This document shows positions 30,122 through 41,825 of a stretch of DNA of 64,000 bases, piece after piece; position 1 is the stretch's first letter, and each line of letters begins with the position of its first letter. Below the pieces are notes generated by a model. It saw only the letters and a program-made list of their open reading frames with translations, searched no databases and was not told where the DNA came from. The translations under genes were made by a program, and so were the position numbers. Source of the stretch: Entomortierella parvispora E1425 (Eukaryota; Fungi; Mortierellomycota); contig BQFW01000006.1 of assembly GCA_020891255.1 (NCBI GenBank), forward strand, positions 1,054,001 through 1,118,000. Direction: 5' to 3'.

Positions 30122-33100
30122 ATGTCGGATGACATCAAAACTTTGAACGAGCTGATCAAGGCCACGGAAGAGGCTTCGCTCAGTCCCCAGGACCGCAAGG
30201 CGCACGCGGCCAAGGTCGGAGCTCATGTCAAGAAGATTGGCGTGATCAAGGCCTTTCACGATGGTCATCTGGTCAAGACCTTGACCACTTTGCTCGAGAA
30301 CAAGAAGCAAGCCCACTTTCGTGAGGCCGCCCTCTTTATCTTGGCAGATGTCAGCAAGGCTGTTGATCAGGCTGGAGAGCCCTATCTAATTCCTTTGATG
30401 CCCAAGGTCCTCGATGGATATGCAGACAAGGCCGTCTCGGTCAGAGATGCAGCCGATGAGGCCAGTAAGGCCATCATGGCTCTTCCCTCTCGCTATGCAG
30501 TCAAGCTGCTGCTGCCTGTTTTGTTTGACTCTATTGAGAATGGACGATGGCAAACCCAGTGCGGTTCCTTGAAGATCTTGTCGGGTCTTTCAAAGACTTC
30601 TCCCAAGGTAACAAGAGAACCCCAATGCACGATGACGGGATGAGTGGTGGTGTGTTTGCTCATCTGCTCCCTGGAACAGGAGGCGGTTGCTTTTTCTCTT
30701 TTGGTTTTTTGTTTCTTTGTTTCTTCTGTGGTACCAGATCCACAGATCATTGCACAAGGTCGGACAGGAATGTGCGACGATGCTTAACCAATTGATAGTA
30801 CCTCGTTTCTTTCATTTGCTCCCTTCATGGCTCGATCATCAACGATCCTTTTATCTCCTTTTTGCTCCTGTTACCCAATTCCCTTGCCTCCTTTGAATCC
30901 TATCTGTTCTCTGTGGCCTTCTACTAACCCCGTTTTCATCATTATCTCGCTTTTTTTTCTCTTCACTTCTTTTGCGATAAAATGACGCTTTTGGTCTCCT
31001 GCAGCAAATCAGCAACTGTCTTTCCGAGATCGTGCCTGTTCTGAGCGCCAGTATGTGGTCCACTCGTCCAGAGGTAAGACACCAAGCACTGCTCCATGAC
31101 CATACCTGCCATTCGCGTATGGCGCGTGAGCAGGTCTTGAACTTTGCCTGCAGTATGACTGGTGCGGGAGCCGTGGGACTTTTTATTTTTTTTATTTTCT
31201 GCTCACTCGCCGTTGTTTGATTTGTAGGTCCGTGAAGAGGCTACCAAGACCACAACTGCTTGCTTTGACGTCGTCGGTAATCCCGATCTGACGTCTTCCA
31301 TCCCCTATCTTGTCGGATGTATCAACAGACCAGAGGAGGCCCCCGAGTGTATTCACCAGCTGGCCTCCACAACCTTTGTGACCACGGTCGAGGCTCCAAC
31401 ACTTGCCATCATGAACCCCCTGTTGATCCGTGGTTTGGCGGAGCGCTCACCTGCTATTCAGCGTCAAACCGCCGTCATTATTGACAACATGTGTAAGCTC
31501 GTGGAGAACCCCGCTCACGCGCACCAGTTCTTGCCAAAGCTTTTGCCTGGTCTTGATCGTATGATTGAGATTGGTGCCTCTCCCGAATTGAGATCGGTTG
31601 CTGAAAAAGCCAGGGCCACTTTGGTTCGTGTCGGTGGAGGTGAGAAGGGTCACGACGATAGCTCCGTCAACATCGCTTATGAAGTAAAGCCTGCCGAGGT
31701 CAAGCAGGAGATCAAGAAGCATTTGCTAAAGGAGGTCAAGGTTGACGACTTTGTCAAGACCAGTTTGCTTTATTCTGCCACTTTGTGCTCCGAGTTGATC
31801 ACTGCCCGCGATTTTGAGCAAGAGGCCTGGCATGCATCCATCGAACCTTACCTTGTCACATTCACGTCCAAGGATGAGGCCAAGAGGGTTGCCTCGGTCG
31901 TCCATAAGCACTTTGTGGACTTTGACGCCAAGAACACCCGTGACAGTGCTGCTGTCGTTGATGTTGAGGAGGGAGAGCTTCTCTGCGATTGCGAGTTCTC
32001 ACTTGCCTATGGTGGTATGATTTTGTTGAACAAGACCCGTTTGAACCTCCGTCGTGGTCAGCGTTACGGTCTTTGCGGACCTAACGGTGTCGGAAAGTCT
32101 ACCTTGATGCGTGCCATTGCTGATGGCCAGCTTGAAGGATTCCCTCCACCAGACGAGCTCCGTACCGTCTTTGTAGAGCACAACCTTCTGGCTGAGGAGG
32201 CCGATCTGCCAGTTATCCAGTTTATGTTTGCAGATCCCAAGCTTAAAGATATCCCCCACGAGGAAGTTGTTGAAAGATTGGCCAGTGTAGGATTCACGCC
32301 CGCAATGCAGCAGCAGGCTGTCGGTTCATTGTCTGGTGGATGGAAGATGAAGTTGGAGTTGGCTCGTGCCATGTTGATGAACGCCGATATTCTCTTGCTG
32401 GATGAGCCCACCAACCATTTGGATGTCTACAACGTCGCCTGGTTGGAGAACTACTTGACCAGTCTCACCAACGTGACCTCGATGGTTGTCTCCCACGACT
32501 CGAGCTTCTTGGATAACGTCTGCACTGGCATTATCCACTACGAGAACCGCAAGTTGAAGAAGTACCGTGGTAACCTGTCCAAGTTTGTGGAGCAGTACCC
32601 CGCCGCCAAGTCTTACTACGAGCTGAAGTCCTCTCTCGTTCACTTCAAGTTGCCAGAGCCCGGTTTCTTGGATGGTGTCAAGTCCAAGGATAAGTCTTTG
32701 CTCCGATTCGTGAACATCTCGTTCACTTACCCTGGTAACACCGTTCCAACCATTCGCAACATGTCGGCTCAGGTCTCGCTCAACTCCCGTGTCGCCGTCG
32801 TTGGACCCAATGGTGCTGGAAAGTCGACTTTGATCAAGGTATTGACTGGAGAAACAGTTCCTCAAGTCGGAGAAGTCATCAAGCACCCCAACTTGCGTGT
32901 CGCTTACGTGGCCCAGCATGCTTTCCATCACGTTGAGCAACATTTGACAAAGACCCCCAACGAGTACATCCGCTGGCGTTACCAGTTTGGTGAGGATCGC
33001 GAGTTGGCCAGTAAGGCTTCCCGTCAGATCACGCCTGAGGAAGAGGCTCAAATGAAGAAGTTGATCCCTTGGGAGTTCAATGAGAAGACTGAGAAGGTTC

Positions 33101-33801
33101 AAATCGACGACATCTACGGTCGTCGCAAGGCCAAGCGCTCGTTCGAATACGAGATTCAATGGGTCGGTCGCCCCTTTGACGACAACGCTTGGATTTCTCG
33201 CGAGTTGTTGGAGGACTGGGGTTTCGAAAAGTTGGTCCAGTCCTTTGATGACAAGGAGGCTGCCCGTGCCGGCGCGTGGACCCGTTCATTGACCGCTGTC
33301 GAAGTGGAGAAGCATTTGGGCGATTTGGGTCTTCCTGCCGAGTTTGCCACTCACAGCCACATCAAGGGTCTTTCTGGAGGTCAGAAGGTCAAGGTTGTTT
33401 TGGCTGCTGCGATGTGGCTCAACCCCCACATCTTGGTTCTGGACGAACCTACCAACTATTTGGACCGAGATTCACTGGGTGCTTTGACCGAGGCTTTGAG
33501 GGAGTTTGGAGGTGGTGTGGTTATCATTTCCCATCACCGTGACTTTACGGGGGCCATTTGCACAGAGACCTGGTCGATCGATGCCGGAGAGCTGACCGTT
33601 ACTGGTAACAACTACACGCAGAGGGCCGAGAGCAAGATTATCCAGAAGGAGGCCGAGACCAAGATCGATGCTTTTGGAAATGTGGAGAAGGTCAAGTCAA
33701 CCAGGAAGCTGTCCCGCAAGGAGATTAAGGAGAAGCAGAAGCGACGCGCCGCGGCCAAGAAACGCGGTGAGGAAGTCTCTGAGTCTGAGGAGGAGTTGTA
33801 A
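30122..33801 (+). CDS. YEF3: Fungal translation elongation factor 3 (1042 aa; exons 30122-30607, 31005-31073, 31228-33801)
   Basis: N-terminal HEAT region, two ABC cassettes (GPNGVGKST, LSGGWKMK, DEPTNHLD; GPNGAGKST, LSGGQKVK), chromodomain-like insert, and a basic tail ending in an acidic segment. Confidence 0.95.
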
Positions 33802-34997: not shown

Positions 34998-36153
34998 CTC
35001 ATATGTAATATACAAATAAAGACCATTGAGGATCAAGTTCAACTGGTTGAAAGGCTACAGTGCTGGGGCACGTACGAGCACAATTGAACCAAAAACCCGC
35101 TAAAGACACCCTGCCCCCTGCTTGGTTGACAAACTCTATGGGTCACAAGTCAATAGAGTCACTCAAGGAGAACGCTTCTTGCATCCAAGAAAGTGGGATG
35201 AGCTCAGCATCGAGCATTGGACGCAAGTTCAATCCCAGGAAACGAATGACCAATTTAATTACGTGCACAAATGAAATGTTCACGTACAGGCTATTTTTAC
35301 CAGTGTATCGAACTTTTGGTGCTTTGGAGATTGTGAATTGTGGCTGGATCTGAAGGACAGACCAGAGCCAAACGAACAGTGGCCAGGCAAAAGAAAAGAA
35401 CGTGCATTCATGCAATCCCTTGAATGGAACATGACAATGGAAGCTCCACCGTCCGCGCTACCCCAGCAAACTCCAATGGATGCACAACTACAGCCATTGC
35501 ACGCCACCACTCATTTTCTTGAACTGGTCTTCGCACTCCTGCTTTTTCACGCGCACGCTCGCCTTTAGGATCTGCCGATACGGGAGAGAAGAGCAAGGCT
35601 TTGGTTTTGGTCAAACAGGATTGTTCACCCGTGCCAGAGACCCACCCGTTGGTACCTTTCTGTCCCTCCCTACCGCTGCAATGGCCTATTCCTCAAGCCC
35701 AACTGACAATTTGTGGCTCACAAAAAGCATGACATGGTTTGTGGACCCAAGAAAAAAAAAAAGGCAGATTCCCGGGCAATGATATCAACCAGGCAAAAAC
35801 ACGTAATGGTCGCGCGAAAAACGCGTTTTCCTTGATGAAATGAGATAATTTGGGGGACGGAACCTTCCTCCCTTCCATTTTTTTCATGTTTCCCTGGCTA
35901 TGCCATGAATGCTTGATATGATGTTGCAAAGAGTCAGCATGGTCCTACGATACTCAATTGTGCGTGAGAACTGCTTGACTCTATCGTGGACAACTGAGCC
36001 ATCAAATCAGTGTTCGTTCTGGGTCCTTCGTTTCCTGGTTCAGAAAAGGTATAAATACCCCCATCGTTGTCACTTTGTAGATCTTCATTCCTGTCTACCT
36101 CACTTTTCTTTTCCCCCTCTTACAACCCTACCACCACTCTCAATCACATCAAT

Positions 36154-36810
36154 ATGTTCCACCGCCACCACGACGGATCTCTCGAAGTCACCATCCACTC
36201 TGCCCACGGCTTGGATGATGTTGAGCGTTTCGGAAAGAACGATGCCTACACTCGCATCTCCCTTGACTTCAAGCACGACAAGTCATTCGAAAAGACCTTT
36301 GTCCACAAGAACGGAGGCGAGAACCCCGTTTGGAACCAAACTTTGACTTTGAAGGACCTTAAGCCTGAATACCACGATTTGTACCTCGAGATCCTCGATG
36401 ATGAGACCACCGTGGATGCCCCTATTGCCTTTGCTGCCATTCCCTTGAACCAGGTCTTTGAATCTCCCAACAACACCTTCTCGGGCAAGTTTGACGTCTA
36501 CACCCCCAGCGGAAAGACCAAGGGCGAGATCAACTTGACCATTCGCGCGCTCCAGCCCGATGAGAGTGCTCAGGGTCAAGTTTCTTACGATGGCTCCGAC
36601 AGAAAGGGTATCTCCCGCATCGACGAGGCTCACCAGAAGCGCGTCAAGAGCTTGAAGAACAAGGAGACTGCCGCCGATGTAGGTGGTGTTGCGCTCGCTG
36701 GCTTGGCTGCCCTCGGTGCCGGTTACTTGTTGACCAAGCAGGACAGCAGTGAGAAGGACAAGAAGGAGGCCGAGGAGAAGTTGAGAAACGAGGCTCGCGA
36801 GTTTGCTTAA
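36154..36810 (+). CDS. Small C2-domain protein A (218 aa, intronless) with C-terminal Gly/Ala-rich hydrophobic helix
   Basis: LEVTIHSAHGLDDVERFGKNDAY, NPVWNQ and EILDDETTVDAPIAFAAIPL; TATAAA at about 36050. Confidence 0.88.
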   Translation: MFHRHHDGSLEVTIHSAHGLDDVERFGKNDAYTRISLDFKHDKSFEKTFVHKNGGENPVWNQTLTLKDLKPEYHDLYLEILDDETTVDAPIAFAAIPLNQVFESPNNTFSGKFDVYTPSGKTKGEINLTIRALQPDESAQGQVSYDGSDRKGISRIDEAHQKRVKSLKNKETAADVGGVALAGLAALGAGYLLTKQDSSEKDKKEAEEKLRNEAREFA

Positions 36811-38319
36811 ATCCATTCTAGATAGTCCATATACCAACAAACTTCACTTCCATGTACATATTCCTCCAAAAAGCAACCAAAAAAAACCCCCTGTGCAACC
36901 TCTTGCCGCTAACACACGCGTTTATTTCCCCTTGGAACTGAACAAAGCGTGTTGTTGTATTGTACCATCGTACAGAATCAAATAAAAGAAAAAAAAAATG
37001 AAACCACAAAAAGACAAAAAAAAACGGTGAGAAAAAGGGTGGGAGTGAAAAAAATCGGTGATTTTTTTTTTTTGTTTGGACCGGGTGCATGAGTTTAAAG
37101 CCCTGAACCTGTTTGCCGCTTTGGAAAGGAAAGCGCGTCTTCGAGCTCAGCCAAGCTTCAGGAGGGGACACGATTCATGCAGGTTGGTGATTGGCGTCAA
37201 CACGCACACGCACCCCTCTTACACCGAGTCGTGCTGCATCCTCTCTGTCCTCCTGTTGCATGAGACAATTAAAAAACGCACAGGCAAGGTCAATGGTGCA
37301 AGCAGGCAGCTTGACTTTCCATGGGGACAGCCAAAAGAGTAGAGGGATCTAAAAGTCCCTCCACCGTGTGAGTTTTTTTTTTTTTTTTTTTTTTTTTCAG
37401 CCTTTTTACTTGGGTGCAGCAATTGGCACCACAAACTACGCGACACTGTGAGATAGAAACAGGTCCCAATGGAGAGATGAGGAAAGAACCCTTCTGCCCT
37501 GGGACATACAGGCATTCACATGGACCTGGCACATTGGCACATTGAGTTTCCTGATTCTTTCGTCCTTTTGAAAATGTTTAAAAATAGATCGACAGACGAT
37601 GACGACGGATCTGGGAAGGAATCCTCGTTATCTCAATGCCAATTTGCAAATGTGATCCACTGGTCCTGGGGACCCCAAAGGCCTTCTGGTGAACTGATTA
37701 TCCTGTCTGCCTTCTGGAATTGCTGTCTCAGCGTAGAAACTAATAGGGACAGTGAGCCCGAACGAGATGTGGTCTTCAGGAACAGACAAACAGGCCTTGT
37801 AAAGAACAACCCGCGGTGGGGTGGGGAGGGTGGCTGTTGCCAGCGTGTGCCCCGCATCGCTCGCTTGGCTAATTTTCTTTTTGGCTGAATGAGGGGCGTA
37901 CATGAATAGAACAATATTATTATTGTGTGAGAACTTGTACGTGTGAAGGATCCATCTGTGGCTTTTGGATGCAAAACTGCACCATCGGATGCGAGTTTCT
38001 TCCGCGTCCTGAAAAAAGAACAGAAAGGCATGATCCCAGACTCATTCCATTGCGTGCTGAGCTATGGGAGGGGTCTCTGCCCCCGAGAAAGTCGACAGAG
38101 AAACGGCCGTTGTCCAAACTTATTCAGAAACAGTAATATTTCTGCATCCCCAAGTTCCTGCACCCCCCCCCCCTTCTTTCCCTGTTGCCATATAAATACC
38201 TTTGGTGGGATCGGTCTTTGTCCTCTTTTTTTTTTTTTCTCAGGCTTCTTCAAACACACAAACACTTTTCCACACCAACCACTCCCACCCTTCAACCTCC
38301 ACCCACATATTCAAAGAAA

Positions 38320-39507
38320 ATGATGCTCGGTCAACAACCTCAGGGCCCTTCCCTCGCCATCACTGCTCACAACGCCAGCGATTTGCAGAACGTTGAGGTA
38401 AAAGAACGCGAAGTTTTATCATGACGCGTATTGTGCCCTCCGCCTCCTCACCACAGCCACCATCCACTCGTACTGTGCCTTTCAGCTTTCTGATGTTTCT
38501 CCTTCTCTCCCTCCTGCCTAATATAATTGTAATGACAATCGCAGACCTTTGGCAAGCAAGATCCCTACTTCCAGTTCTCCCTCGACATTACCAACCCCAA
38601 ATCCTTCCAAAAGTCCTTTGTGCACAAGGATGCAGGCAAGAACCCTGTCTGGAACCAGTCCTTCAACATCCCCCTGAACCGTGAGCCCGAGTTGTTCGTC
38701 GAGATTATGGATGAGGAGATGACCGCAGATGCTGTCATTGGCTTTGCCGCCATTCCTTTGACCCAGGTGTATAATGCCCCCGGTGCTACACTCTACGGCA
38801 ACTTTGATCTCTACACCACGGCGCTGAAGCAGGTCGGAACAGTCACTTTGACCCTGACTGCCCACAACCTTCCAGGCACCGCCCCAGGCTATGGTGCACC
38901 AAGCTCCTCGCCCATTCGAGGAGAATCACGCATCAACGAGATCCATCAGAAGCGTATCAAGTCCCTTAAATCCAAGGAGGTCGCTACTGAAGTCGGTGCC
39001 GCCGCCTTGGGAGGTCTCTTTGCCGTTGGTGCCGGTCTTTTGGCCAACAAACTTGTTCAGGACGGACACAAGAAAGAGCAGGCCCGCAAGGAGCAAGAGG
39101 CCGAGGCCCAGGCGGAGCGTGAACGTTTGGAATCTGAGAAGAAGGCCCTGGAGGAACAACGCTCGACTTATGAGAGAACCCACTCTGAGGAGGAAGCCAA
39201 GCTCGCGCGCGAACAGGAGGCACTCCGGGTCCAACAAAAGTTCAACTCGTCCTCAGAGGACCAAGCCAGGATCGCGCGTGAGCAAGAGGCACTCCGAATC
39301 CAACAAAAGTTCAACTCCTCATCCCGAGAGGAGCACCACGAACATCACCACCACAGCAAACACCACAGCAGTTGGAACGCCACCGGAACATACTCGGTCG
39401 GTGAGAAGGTTACTTATCAGGGCCGCGAATTCATTTGCCTCCAGGGCCATACTTCCAACCCCACCTGGGAGCCTACCCAGGCCCACTCTCTGTGGCGCGC
39501 CGAGTAA
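38320..39507 (+). CDS. C2-domain protein B with coiled coil and C-terminal CBM5/12 (ChtBD3-type) chitin-binding module (346 aa; exons 38320-38397, 38545-39507)
   Basis: C2 motifs parallel to paralog A. The C-terminus WNATGTYSVGEKVTYQGREFICLQGHTSNPTWEPTQAHSLW matches the CBM5/12 pattern W...Y..GD.VTY.G..Y.C.Q.HTS...W.P....LW. Confidence 0.88.
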
Positions 39508-40121
39508 TTGATCTCCTTCATATTCATGGGATCCAGATGCTTACACACACACAAAAAAACTTGTAAATACAACGTTGTCGCAATTTCCTCCAACAATCCA
39601 GATGCAAAGCCTCACACAAACATAAGTCCCTTTGAATAAATATGAAAGATCAACCAATATGAAAGAAGTACCTTTTGCTGTCCCTTCCGAAGAAAACGCG
39701 TACACACTGTAGGTTTAGCGCACAGCACACCGAGGCAAGATTGAGGCGTACATACAATGTCTGTAACGAGATCAAGTTGGCAGAAACGATCGGGATTGCG
39801 ATCGTGACCCAGATCTACAGAGAAAGAGCGAGAATGAGAGACGGGTTTTGGCGCCGGGCTGGTTTTTTTTTCTTCACAAAGAGCAAAATGTCCAACTCAC
39901 CTTTTGGTGCAACCATCAATGTTCCACAGGGACCTTTGTGTCAAGGTACAGGTACGATGCGCAAGCGGGCTGAGAGAGCATGACCAGAAGAACCAATTGC
40001 GCCTTCTTTTTTATTTTTGCCCTCTTTGTCAACTTCTTTCCTTTCTTCACCCCATCCTATCTCTCGCTCTCTCCTCTCTGCCCCTCCTCCCCTCCTCCCC
40101 TCTTCTTCTTTTTCTGACTCC

Positions 40122-40944
40122 ATGACCTCACATTCTTCGCGTCTACCCGTTCTCGTTGTTGGTGGAGGTCTCGGGGGCCTTACCATGGCCATCCTCCTTG
40201 AACGCGCAGGACTAAACTACCTTGTTTTCGAAAAGAGCTCGGAGGTTCATGCTCTGGGAAGTGCCACCAATCTAGGTCCCAACATTCAACCGCTCTTTGA
40301 GCAGTTGGGACTCTTTGAAAAACTGGTGGCCATCTCAAAGCCCTCGAGCAAGGTCGACATCTTCAACGAGCGAATGGAGCAGATTGGCGCCATCAACTAC
40401 AACGAATATCTCTCAAAGTACGGCATTTGACTAGTAACAACATGCAAAAGCTAACACCACTTCATCTTTTTAAACTGACCTGATTCTACCTTTCAGATGT
40501 GGGTACGAATCGCGTACGATGTCGAGACCCGACCTCCATCGGCTATTACTAGACCAAGTACCGGACAGCAAGACACTTTTCGGGAAGAAAATCCTTCGGA
40601 TTGAACAGGATCCAGAAAAGGTGACGGTTTACTGCGGCGACGGCTCAGTTTATCATGGGAGCTTGTTGATAGGATCGGATGGCGCGTACAGCAAGGTGCG
40701 CAGAAGTCTATATGAACAGATGGAGGCCCAAGGAATAAAGGTCCCAAAGACGGACACCCAAAATTTAACGGCCTGGCACAGGAGTATCTTGGGCATCACT
40801 GATCCTCTGGATCCAGAACGTTACCCTGTAGTCAAAGAGCCAGCTACAAGATATATCTCCGTGATCGGGGATAATAAGCCTAACACGGTACGTCGCCTTT
40901 GCAGCTATTTTCAACAAAGATGATCTGGCAAATGTCAAATTAAT

Positions 40945-40976
<32 letters not shown>

Positions 40977-41825
40977 GAAAAAAAAGTGGCGTTGCTGGAC
41001 CATACCTGGCAATCGGATCTGTTGGAGAATGGACCATCATATCGCGTCCTCTTCCGTCGCAGCTTCTTTTTCATCAGCGCCAACATCCATGAATGATCCG
41101 AATAGCAGGGCCGAATGGGGCACAGAGGAATCTATCAACTCTATTCCCGAGACATGGAGGTCATTTCCAATGCCAATTGGTGGTACCATGGGAGATTTAG
41201 TAGACATGACTCCACCCAAGGTCATTTCGAGAGTTGTGCTAGAGGAGAAGCTATATAAGACGTGGTTTCATGGACGAGTAGTCCTCATGGGTGACGCTTG
41301 TCACAAGATGCTGCCCAACTCAGGGCGTGGTGCAGTCAACGCAATAACTGATGCAATCGTGTTAGCGAACGCTTTGCACGATTGTCAGATAACCCATGAT
41401 CAAAGCCTAGGGAATCTCAAAGCGGCGTTTAAACGGTACTACAAAGAGCGGTATCCTCAAGCAGTTGCAGAGCTTGAAAGAAGCAAACGTATGGCCCGCG
41501 TCGTAGCTGGGCAGGTAAGAGAGCACCTACTACGTAGCCATGTTACTAAGCATACTAAGCAGAGAGCGGCGATCTTGACAACGGTCCTACTTTTCTAACA
41601 AAACAAAACTAAAAACAAAAAAAAAAAAAATAGACCAAATTCGACATCATGGTGCGCAAAGTCTTTTTTGCTCTCCTTCCAAAGTCATTCAAAGACAATA
41701 GCTACTCTGCCATGCTCCGGTATCGACCACAGGTGAAATATCTCCCTCGTATTCAAGACCGTGGCCAACATTTACCTTTGTCTCCACAGTCCTCTAGCTC
41801 AAATTACTTTTGCTGGAGACCTTAG
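40122..41825 (+). CDS. FAD-dependent monooxygenase, group A / salicylate-hydroxylase-like (468 aa; exons 40122-40417, 40497-40887, 40987-41514, 41634-41825)
   Basis: VLVVGGGLGGL (GxGxxG), LLIGSDGAYSKVR (DG motif) and RVVLMGDACHKMLPNSGRGA (GD motif). Confidence 0.92.

Follow-up and report, generated by a model that had tools for sequence, protein, structure and literature searches.

A tandem pair of C2-domain genes in Entomortierella parvispora, one ending in a CBM5/12 module: a candidate link between membrane and wall chitin

Introduction

What can a fungal protein that lacks a signal peptide do with a module of the chitin-binding kind? The question is raised by a pair of paralogous genes, here called A and B, at positions 36154-39507 of a 64,000-nucleotide stretch of the Entomortierella parvispora E1425 genome (contig BQFW01000006.1; the whole stretch is referred to as the window). 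Both genes encode a C2 domain followed by a basic helix and a Gly/Ala-rich apolar helix, and B continues into a long charged helix, a His-rich linker and a terminal carbohydrate-binding module of family 5/12 (CBM5/12). An earlier sequence-only reading saw in this pair a possible, undescribed two-component system; Ca2+ triggering, membrane-to-wall linkage and wound sealing were roles inferred there and are treated as such here. The domains, their conservation, the pairing of the genes and their evolutionary history are observed directly and are described first. Our tentative preference, held with less than even confidence, is that B is a membrane-embedded adaptor that would couple a Ca2+- and acidic-lipid-sensing head to wall chitin, with A as its arm-less partner.

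Results

Architecture of the two genes

Gene A is uninterrupted, and its product is identical to the deposited protein P0001. The C2 domain of B is split by a predicted intron, a detail absent from the earlier reading. It is supported by signals in the sequence, by the annotation as deposited and by the alignment of B with A, which has no intron: the deposited protein P0043 (EMPS_04369, Entomortierella parvispora, 346 aa), which served as the reference for full-length B, starts as exon 1, ends as exon 2 and has exactly their summed length. The stop of A lies 1,509 bp before the start of B, in agreement with the coordinates and the spacing of about 1.5 kb first given for these paralogs, and the two proteins are 47% identical over 192 aa (BLASTP, E 1e-55). 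Besides the C2 domain, the alignment takes in both the basic and the apolar helix, enters the first turns of the charged region and ends at residue 214 of A. Coordinates of all features are collected in Table 1.

The C2 domain and the helix docked on it

Profile searches, which had been proposed as a check on the domain calls, placed both the C2 and the CBM_5_12 domain above their Pfam gathering scores. For C2 (PF00168), A scores 55.6 bits (E 6.9e-15) and full-length B 50.2 bits (E 3.2e-13), against a cut-off of 22. The AlphaFold2 (AF2) model of A, built on a 21-sequence alignment with a mean predicted local distance difference test score (pLDDT) of 81.7, and Foldseek comparisons with solved structures agree on the eight-stranded β-sandwich of a C2 domain. 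The top structure found by Foldseek is the Ca2+-bound C2A domain of dysferlin (7JOF; E 1.5e-9, template-modelling (TM) score 0.83 by target). Ca2+-bound Trichomonas C2 proteins and a plant elicitor-responsive C2 are also near, and many solved C2 domains match with a Foldseek probability of 1.00 and TM scores of 0.8-0.86 by target.

C2 domains bind acidic membranes, often with Ca2+. The acidic residues first remarked upon at the C2 loop positions of the pair are a property of the whole family: D22, E24, D30, D82 and D88 of A, and the MDEE..D motif of B, vary little or not at all among 21 A-type and 20 B-type proteins, respectively. HMMER alignments to synaptotagmin-7 and to a Trichomonas C2 put E24, D30, D82/D83 and D88 of A at or beside Ca2+-ligand positions, and Ca2+ binding by the C2 domain is plausible.

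The C2 domain is followed by a conserved extension. The segment around residues 151-170 of A (pLDDT 95-97) is modeled as a short strand and the first part of the basic helix, both docked on the C2 domain. In the A-type alignment G152, R163, E171 and D175 are invariant or nearly so, and the corresponding segment of B retains G126, S128, I130, H134, R137, K139, L141 and E145 (exon-2 numbering) in all 20 B-type proteins. The block of basic helix and Gly/Ala-rich helix that had been noticed downstream of both C2 domains is conserved family-wide in these alignments.

The CBM5/12 module of B

The terminal module of B scores 47 bits with the Pfam CBM_5_12 profile (E 2.5e-12, and 2.6e-12 in full-length B; cut-off 26.2), and the orthologs of Sorochytrium and Fennellomyces likewise exceed the threshold. 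Its alignment with the ChiA1 chitin-binding domain of Bacillus circulans (1ED7, E 3.1e-9) is full-length, and the tandem carbohydrate-binding modules (CBMs) of Vibrio chitin-oligosaccharide deacetylases match it as well. Aromatic residues shared with 1ED7 are the N-terminal Trp, a Tyr, the Trp of the TWEP motif and the C-terminal Trp, all of them invariant in 20 B-types. The TWEP Trp presumably corresponds to the ChiA1 Trp that is critical for chitin binding; modules of the ChiA1 type bind insoluble chitin. Altogether 13 module columns are invariant among the 20 B-types, and the module is the best-conserved part of B across phyla. In the AF2 model of B exon 2 it is a confident small terminal β module (pLDDT 80-87). 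The earlier assignment of a charged arm, a His-rich linker and a terminal CBM5/12 to B is borne out by these matches and by the model of the arm described below. One metagenomic protein, P0092 (254 aa), has its CBM only about 10 residues past the apolar helix and Met in place of the TWEP Trp, and may be a degenerate form.

The context of the module is unusual. CBM5/12 modules normally occur in secreted proteins with a signal peptide; here B and all its orthologs have a hydrophilic N-terminus, and their one apolar stretch is internal. Since the N-termini of A and B are not hydrophobic, neither protein has a signal peptide, as had been stated from the start. An ESM Atlas structure search with the CBM returned bacterial and viral CBM5/12 proteins only, and an Atlas feature search for the module outside C2 families gave no usable match.

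Relatives, pairing and history of the family

The family was surveyed by word-index and profile searches, and statements on taxa refer to the matches listed. The word-index search with A found at least 42 proteins. Throughout the Mortierellaceae these comprise short forms (~195-220 aa, C2 only) and long forms (~310-365 aa, C2 plus CBM_5_12), and Lichtheimia has a relative with C2 alone. When just the CBM served as query, the matches listed were all C2+CBM proteins, some of them from Cunninghamella and Absidia. At least 96 matches below 1e-30 were obtained in a profile search of 1.84 billion representatives; those that carry names add Fennellomyces, Apophysomyces, Sporodiniella and Pilobolus (Mucorales), Calcarisporiella, and Sorochytrium milnesiophthora (Blastocladiomycota). 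The survey of architecture and synteny that the sequence-only reading had called for finds, in Mortierellaceae, Mucorales, Calcarisporiella and Sorochytrium alike, the B plan of a C2 domain, the basic, the Gly-rich and the E/R/K-rich helix, the His-rich linker and the CBM, with the same order of parts in all lineages. No member from Dikarya is among the matches listed. A further word-index search with a profile of distant B-types, whose candidates came mostly from low-complexity words, added no new phylum among the matches listed, and when the fold of A was searched in the Atlas, only the Mucoromycota cluster to which A belongs came back. The top of the profile search is also occupied by giant proteins (P0068-P0082 and others) of 1,400-4,000 aa, which have 8-17 C2 stretches of this subtype and no terminal anchor.

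The order A then B on one strand recurs in at least six genomes, twice in E. parvispora itself, where the second locus is EMPS_09621/09620. A same-strand pair is present in Linnemannia schmuckeri, consecutive locus tags mark the pair in Haplosporangium gracile and in Mortierella spp. 14UC, AD032 and GBA30, and Actinomortierella wolfii (L005 930-7206) has an A-A-B arrangement, with two short C2 genes followed by a long C2+CBM gene on one strand. In Fennellomyces and Sorochytrium the B-type gene stands alone. The two-component idea thus holds to the extent that A and B are conserved as a unit in the Mortierellaceae, and fails as a general description since B-types occur without A in Mucorales and Sorochytrium.

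Trees were computed without fragments and without proteins longer than 450 aa. In a tree of 85 rows the 33 Mortierellaceae A-types form one clade (Shimodaira-Hasegawa-like approximate likelihood ratio test 100). The short forms of Mucorales nest among the long forms of the same order, a sign that the arm was lost there independently. In a tree of eight pairs with outgroups, the Mortierellaceae A and B proteins together exclude the outgroups (85/99), and the A-types are monophyletic (100/100) and nested among B-types. A thus has a single origin, a tandem duplication of a B-type gene in the Mortierellaceae lineage, with loss of everything past the first turns of the charged helix. One group of pairs comprises the window pair, GBA30, AD032, L. 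schmuckeri and H. gracile, and another the second E. parvispora pair, 14UC and A. wolfii. That these groups recur in the A and B halves of the tree suggests that the pair was later duplicated and kept as a unit; the B-side groupings are weak (48-62%, with unresolved forks).

The apolar helix and the charged arm

The Gly/Ala-rich helix is the sole strongly apolar stretch in either protein. In the AF2 model of A it is part of one long helix, residues 158-217, whose apolar part has pLDDT values of 44-46; the apolar stretch of B is below 50. Its N-terminal flank is polybasic (net charge +1 to +5) and its C-terminal flank about neutral, and a positive N-side flank would orient the N-terminus inside. 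The glycine positions of the helix are conserved from Mortierella through Mucorales to Sorochytrium, which suggests sequence-specific helix-helix packing and fits this better than a simple greasy anchor.

The AF2 model of B exon 2 has a helix at residues 173-259 (pLDDT ~76-88), and orthologs have E/R/K-rich stretches at this place. Helices rich in E, R and K are stiff spacers. The predicted TM score of the B model (pTM) is 0.42, so the arrangement of the CBM relative to the C2 domain is not modeled with confidence. Part of the charged helix of B is an in-frame tandem duplication, of which the nearest relative, P0044, has only a part; the duplication is therefore recent. Each 23-aa unit terminates in an N-S-S sequon. 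The linker that follows is His-rich in all lineages. In the Mucorales B-types P0059, P0061, P0064 and P0124 it contains repeated Cys-His-Lys-rich motifs of the D-C-H-K-K-K-K type, which suggests metal binding.

Discussion

A model for B and A, and its topology

We favor, tentatively as stated above, an adaptor in which the N-terminal C2 domain and its docked basic helix would form a head on the cytosolic face of the membrane. The Gly/Ala-rich helix, with its small-xxx-small pattern, would anchor B in the bilayer and probably drive oligomerization. The C-terminal arm, consisting of the charged helix of about 13 nm, the His-rich linker and the ChiA1-type module, would reach the innermost wall chitin, so that the N-terminus would lie inside and the C-terminus outside. 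A would be a Mortierellaceae-specific tandem duplicate that kept head and anchor and lost the arm; it would probably co-assemble with B through the common helix and so set the number of wall attachments per complex. Ca2+ and lipid binding, chitin binding, membrane insertion, the topology and the A-B assembly are the parts of this model that we infer.

The order of parts in B is that of a cytosolic-type domain, an apolar helix of 18-21 residues and an extracellular-type domain, and this order and the charges that flank the helix fit a protein with the C2 domain inside and the CBM outside. Several observations nevertheless weigh against membrane insertion with an exposed arm. The helix is marginally hydrophobic, with Kyte-Doolittle means of 1.2-2.0 across the family and AF2 confidence below 50, and a crude Hessa-scale sum, which is a rough guide only, is positive in every member. 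Its 18-21 apolar residues are reportedly short for a span of the fungal plasma membrane, and some A-types have a lysine within the helix or lack the helix altogether. The arm, in 55 B-type proteins, is rich in E, K, R, Q, H, D and S and poor in Thr, often with runs of K and SD-repeats. No N-glycosylation sequon after the helix is conserved in the B-types, and the three sequons of B are species-specific. KR and RR pairs are not depleted in the arms of the 55 proteins (110 observed, 96 expected from shuffles), and single proteins of Cunninghamella and Sorochytrium have up to 10 such dibasic sites, which would be unexpected for an exposed stretch that passes the kexin of the Golgi. The composition of the arm and its dibasic sites thus favor, to some extent, an arm in the cytosol. 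They do not decide the topology, however, for proteases cut helices poorly and SD-repeat stalks are present on surface proteins of bacteria. Finally, in the plant protein VvSrc2 the predicted transmembrane helix is dispensable for membrane localization, and the protein is partly nuclear (PMC12684713).

Alternative explanations

Because of the marginal helix and the cytosol-like arm, a fully cytosolic protein stays a serious rival, and both topologies first considered, bitopic and fully cytosolic, survive the tests run here. All of B would then lie in the cytosol, with the helix as a shallow or monotopic anchor or as an oligomerization helix and the CBM free of ligand in intact hyphae; upon a tear in the membrane, Ca2+ would enter, the C2 domain would clamp membranes or vesicles, and the arm would bind the exposed chitin to form a tether at the wound. 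This is possible though doubtful. The short and marginally hydrophobic helix, the nucleocytoplasmic type of arm with its undepleted dibasic sites and no conserved sequons, and the localization of the plant Src2 analogue all agree with it. So does the occurrence of the architecture, among the matches listed, only in largely coenocytic lineages (Mortierellaceae, Mucorales, Calcarisporiella and Sorochytrium), but this restriction is apparent only, seen among those matches. The nearest solved C2 domain belongs to dysferlin, a membrane-repair protein, a weak argument as the C2 matches score close together. On the other side, we know of no precedent for a cytosolic CBM5/12 that awaits exposure of the wall, and the very strong conservation of the module suggests constant rather than occasional use. 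Moreover, Mucorales already have a described wound plug, gellin: a passage of PMC12712441, citing Nguyen 2021, gives gellin gelation as their wound response. A wound role for the present family would add to gellin and not be the sole system. A sharper version, which we consider unlikely, makes B a cytosolic, membrane-bound coincidence detector of rupture in coenocytic fungi that would respond only to the combination of Ca2+ influx, sensed through the C2 domain, and naked inner-wall chitin, sensed through the CBM on its rigid 13-nm arm. At the wound, B would then staple the wall to membrane or vesicles, and A, which has no arm, would act as a modulator. If true, B would be the first case of a chitin-binding module that senses damage from within the cell.

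Two further explanations change the ligand or the task of the module. Quite unlikely is a general SRC2-like adaptor for Ca2+ and lipid, in which the ligand of the module would be a protein, another polymer, or an aromatic or anionic compound of wall or storage. The plan of a C2 domain with a C-terminal Gly-rich helix is indeed common to plant SRC2-like proteins such as that of Rumex (P0210), CBM5/12 modules also occur on enzymes other than chitinases, e.g. the intradiol dioxygenase 4ILV, and the conservation of the module extends well past the aromatic residues; yet its best match is a proven chitin binder whose key aromatics are kept, the walls of these fungi are rich in chitin and chitosan, and no result points to another ligand. 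We give very little weight to a role of the pair as co-factors of chitin synthesis or of septum or plug formation, with the module holding nascent chitin near the synthase. An N-terminal C2 domain joined to a link with chitin would suit such a role, and for Aspergillus a function in septation and an effect on wound survival are described for the SppA/Inn1 C2 proteins (PMC10023807). Neither A nor B, however, has a Pro-rich PxxP tail after the C2 domain, and no chitin synthase gene lies beside the pair at the six loci inspected. Nascent chitin is, moreover, extruded and not exposed to the cytosol.

Comparison with known systems

The closest resemblance is to plant SRC2-type proteins (VvSrc2, CaSRC2-1, AtSRC2), which are likewise small and lack a signal peptide; their single C2 domain sits at the N-terminus, and an apolar Gly-rich helix lies near the C-terminus. 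VvSrc2-type proteins reach membranes mainly via the C2 domain (PMC12684713). The linker of the plant proteins is Pro/Tyr-rich, where the present family has a short conserved strand and the docked basic helix, and the plant proteins have neither a charged arm nor a carbohydrate-binding module. The profile search matched an SRC2-like protein of Rumex (P0210, E 1.5e-22), with C2 and Gly-rich helix and without the arm; the match is at the level of the C2 domain and falls short of orthology, as the plant protein stands on a branch of 2.4 in the 85-row tree. The gene model of P0210 (Rumex salicifolius, 424 aa) resembles two SRC2-like C2/Gly-rich-helix units fused head to tail.

Ferlins (dysferlin, myoferlin, otoferlin) combine C2 domains with a tail anchor at the C-terminus and serve the repair or fusion of membranes upon a Ca2+ trigger. 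They are giant proteins with five to seven C2 domains, FerA, FerB and DysF regions and no wall-binding module, whereas A and B have a single C2 domain and an uncertain anchor; membership in the ferlins was rejected on the single C2 domain and on the lack of any other Pfam match to a ferlin region. The module of B aligns over its full length with the ChiA1 chitin-binding domain (1ED7, CBM family 12), including the aromatic and the His-Thr-Ser/Trp-Glu-Pro positions, but the ChiA1 module is bacterial and sits on a secreted hydrolase, whereas that of B ends a fungal protein with no signal peptide or catalytic domain. Yeast Wsc1 and Mid2 are alike in concept, being single-pass proteins whose stalk joins the wall to a cytosolic signaling end. 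Both are of type I and carry a signal peptide and a WSC or other head; their stalk is rich in Ser/Thr and mannosylated, and their tail in the cytosol is short. A and B have none of these features, and membership in the Wsc/Mid2 proteins was rejected. The fungal proteins Inn1, Fic1 and SppA also have their C2 domain at the N-terminus and are linked functionally to the building of the (chitin) septum and to wound survival; in Dikarya, C2 proteins of this Inn1/SppA type work at the septum (PMC10023807). Their tail is long and Pro-rich with PxxP motifs, and they have neither an apolar helix nor a CBM; in the absence of a PxxP motif 3' of the C2 domain in A and B membership in this group was rejected as well.

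None of these closest known kinds joins a C2 head to a carbohydrate-binding arm. Full-text literature searches found no published description of a combination of C2 with CBM5/12 or another chitin-binding domain, nor of C2 proteins of Mucoromycota, and a search for Mortierella with C2 gave unrelated papers only. The earlier expectation that the architecture is undescribed agrees with these searches, and deposited proteins of the family are named only 'hypothetical' or 'C2 domain-containing'.

Surroundings of the gene pair

The same 10-mer, TATAAATACC, precedes both genes; the two copies are probably TATA boxes and may reflect common promoter ancestry. The 1.5-kb spacer between A and B has long A-rich tracts and a T-run of about 26 bases (36960-37080, 37372-37397), with no open reading frame (ORF) that has a homolog and no Rfam match; an Rfam scan of 35000-40500 gave zero matches. 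A tblastn search of the window showed neither a relic of arm or CBM 3' of gene A nor extra copies. The flanking genes encode an eEF3-like ABC ATPase, a hypothetical protein and a FAD-monooxygenase-like protein, and offer no functional clue. The eEF3-like double ABC ATPase ORF lies upstream of the pair at 31378-33801 (+), and the Linnemannia schmuckeri pair is also adjoined by an ABC_tran gene (L004 7621-9285, -); the ABC neighbor in both species may be leftover synteny. At 40100-41600 (+), ORF pieces with a GGGxGG FAD-binding motif resemble an intron-split monooxygenase gene.

Table 1 Features of the A-B locus, in positions of the window.
Feature	Position	Strand	Remarks
TATAAATACC box, 5' of A	36050-36059	+	~100 bp before A start; read from sequence
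Gene A	36154-36810	+	single exon (ORF), 218 aa; C2, basic helix, apolar helix, short charged tail
C2 β-sandwich of A, residues 8-133	36175-36552	+	AF2 pLDDT >90; Foldseek
Conserved extension and basic helix of A, residues 150-175	36601-36678	+	docked on C2; AF2
Gly/Ala-rich apolar helix of A, residues 176-194	36679-36735	+	Kyte-Doolittle 19-residue mean 1.71
Charged C-terminal tail of A, 24 residues	36736-36807	+	aligns with start of B charged helix (BLASTP)
TATAAATACC box, 5' of B	38191-38200	+	~120 bp before B start; same 10-mer as at A
Gene B exon 1	38320-38397	+	26 aa, first C2 strand; N-terminus of P0043
Gene B intron	38398-38544	+	147 nt, GT..AG
Gene B exon 2	38545-39507	+	320 aa plus stop; C-terminus of P0043
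Conserved extension and basic helix of B, exon-2 residues 126-148	38920-38988	+	alignment
Gly/Ala-rich apolar helix of B, exon-2 residues 150-168	38992-39048	+	Kyte-Doolittle 1.67
Long E/K/R/Q-rich helix of B	39061-39321	+	~87 residues, ~13 nm if straight
In-frame tandem duplication in charged helix	39183-39320	+	69 nt, two 23-aa units, 84% identity
His-rich linker of B	39322-39372	+	sequence
CBM5/12 (ChtBD3-type) module of B	39373-39504	+	Pfam PF02839; 1ED7 match

Implications

The domains of A and B are familiar, yet their arrangement is conserved, uncharacterized and apparently lineage-restricted. The module is small and close to a domain already used as an affinity tag, so that tests of binding should be easy. 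If the proposed role of B is true, the family would be one of the few examples of a CBM5/12 found elsewhere than in its usual setting, secreted proteins. Hyphae are mostly aseptate, and walls rich in chitin and chitosan, in Mortierella, in blastoclads and in Mucorales, among which are agents of mucormycosis. To our knowledge, little has been learned of how membrane and wall are attached in early-diverging fungi, or of how Ca2+ signaling is joined there with wall integrity. For these fungi the family provides a concrete candidate for membrane-wall coupling or for a wound response.

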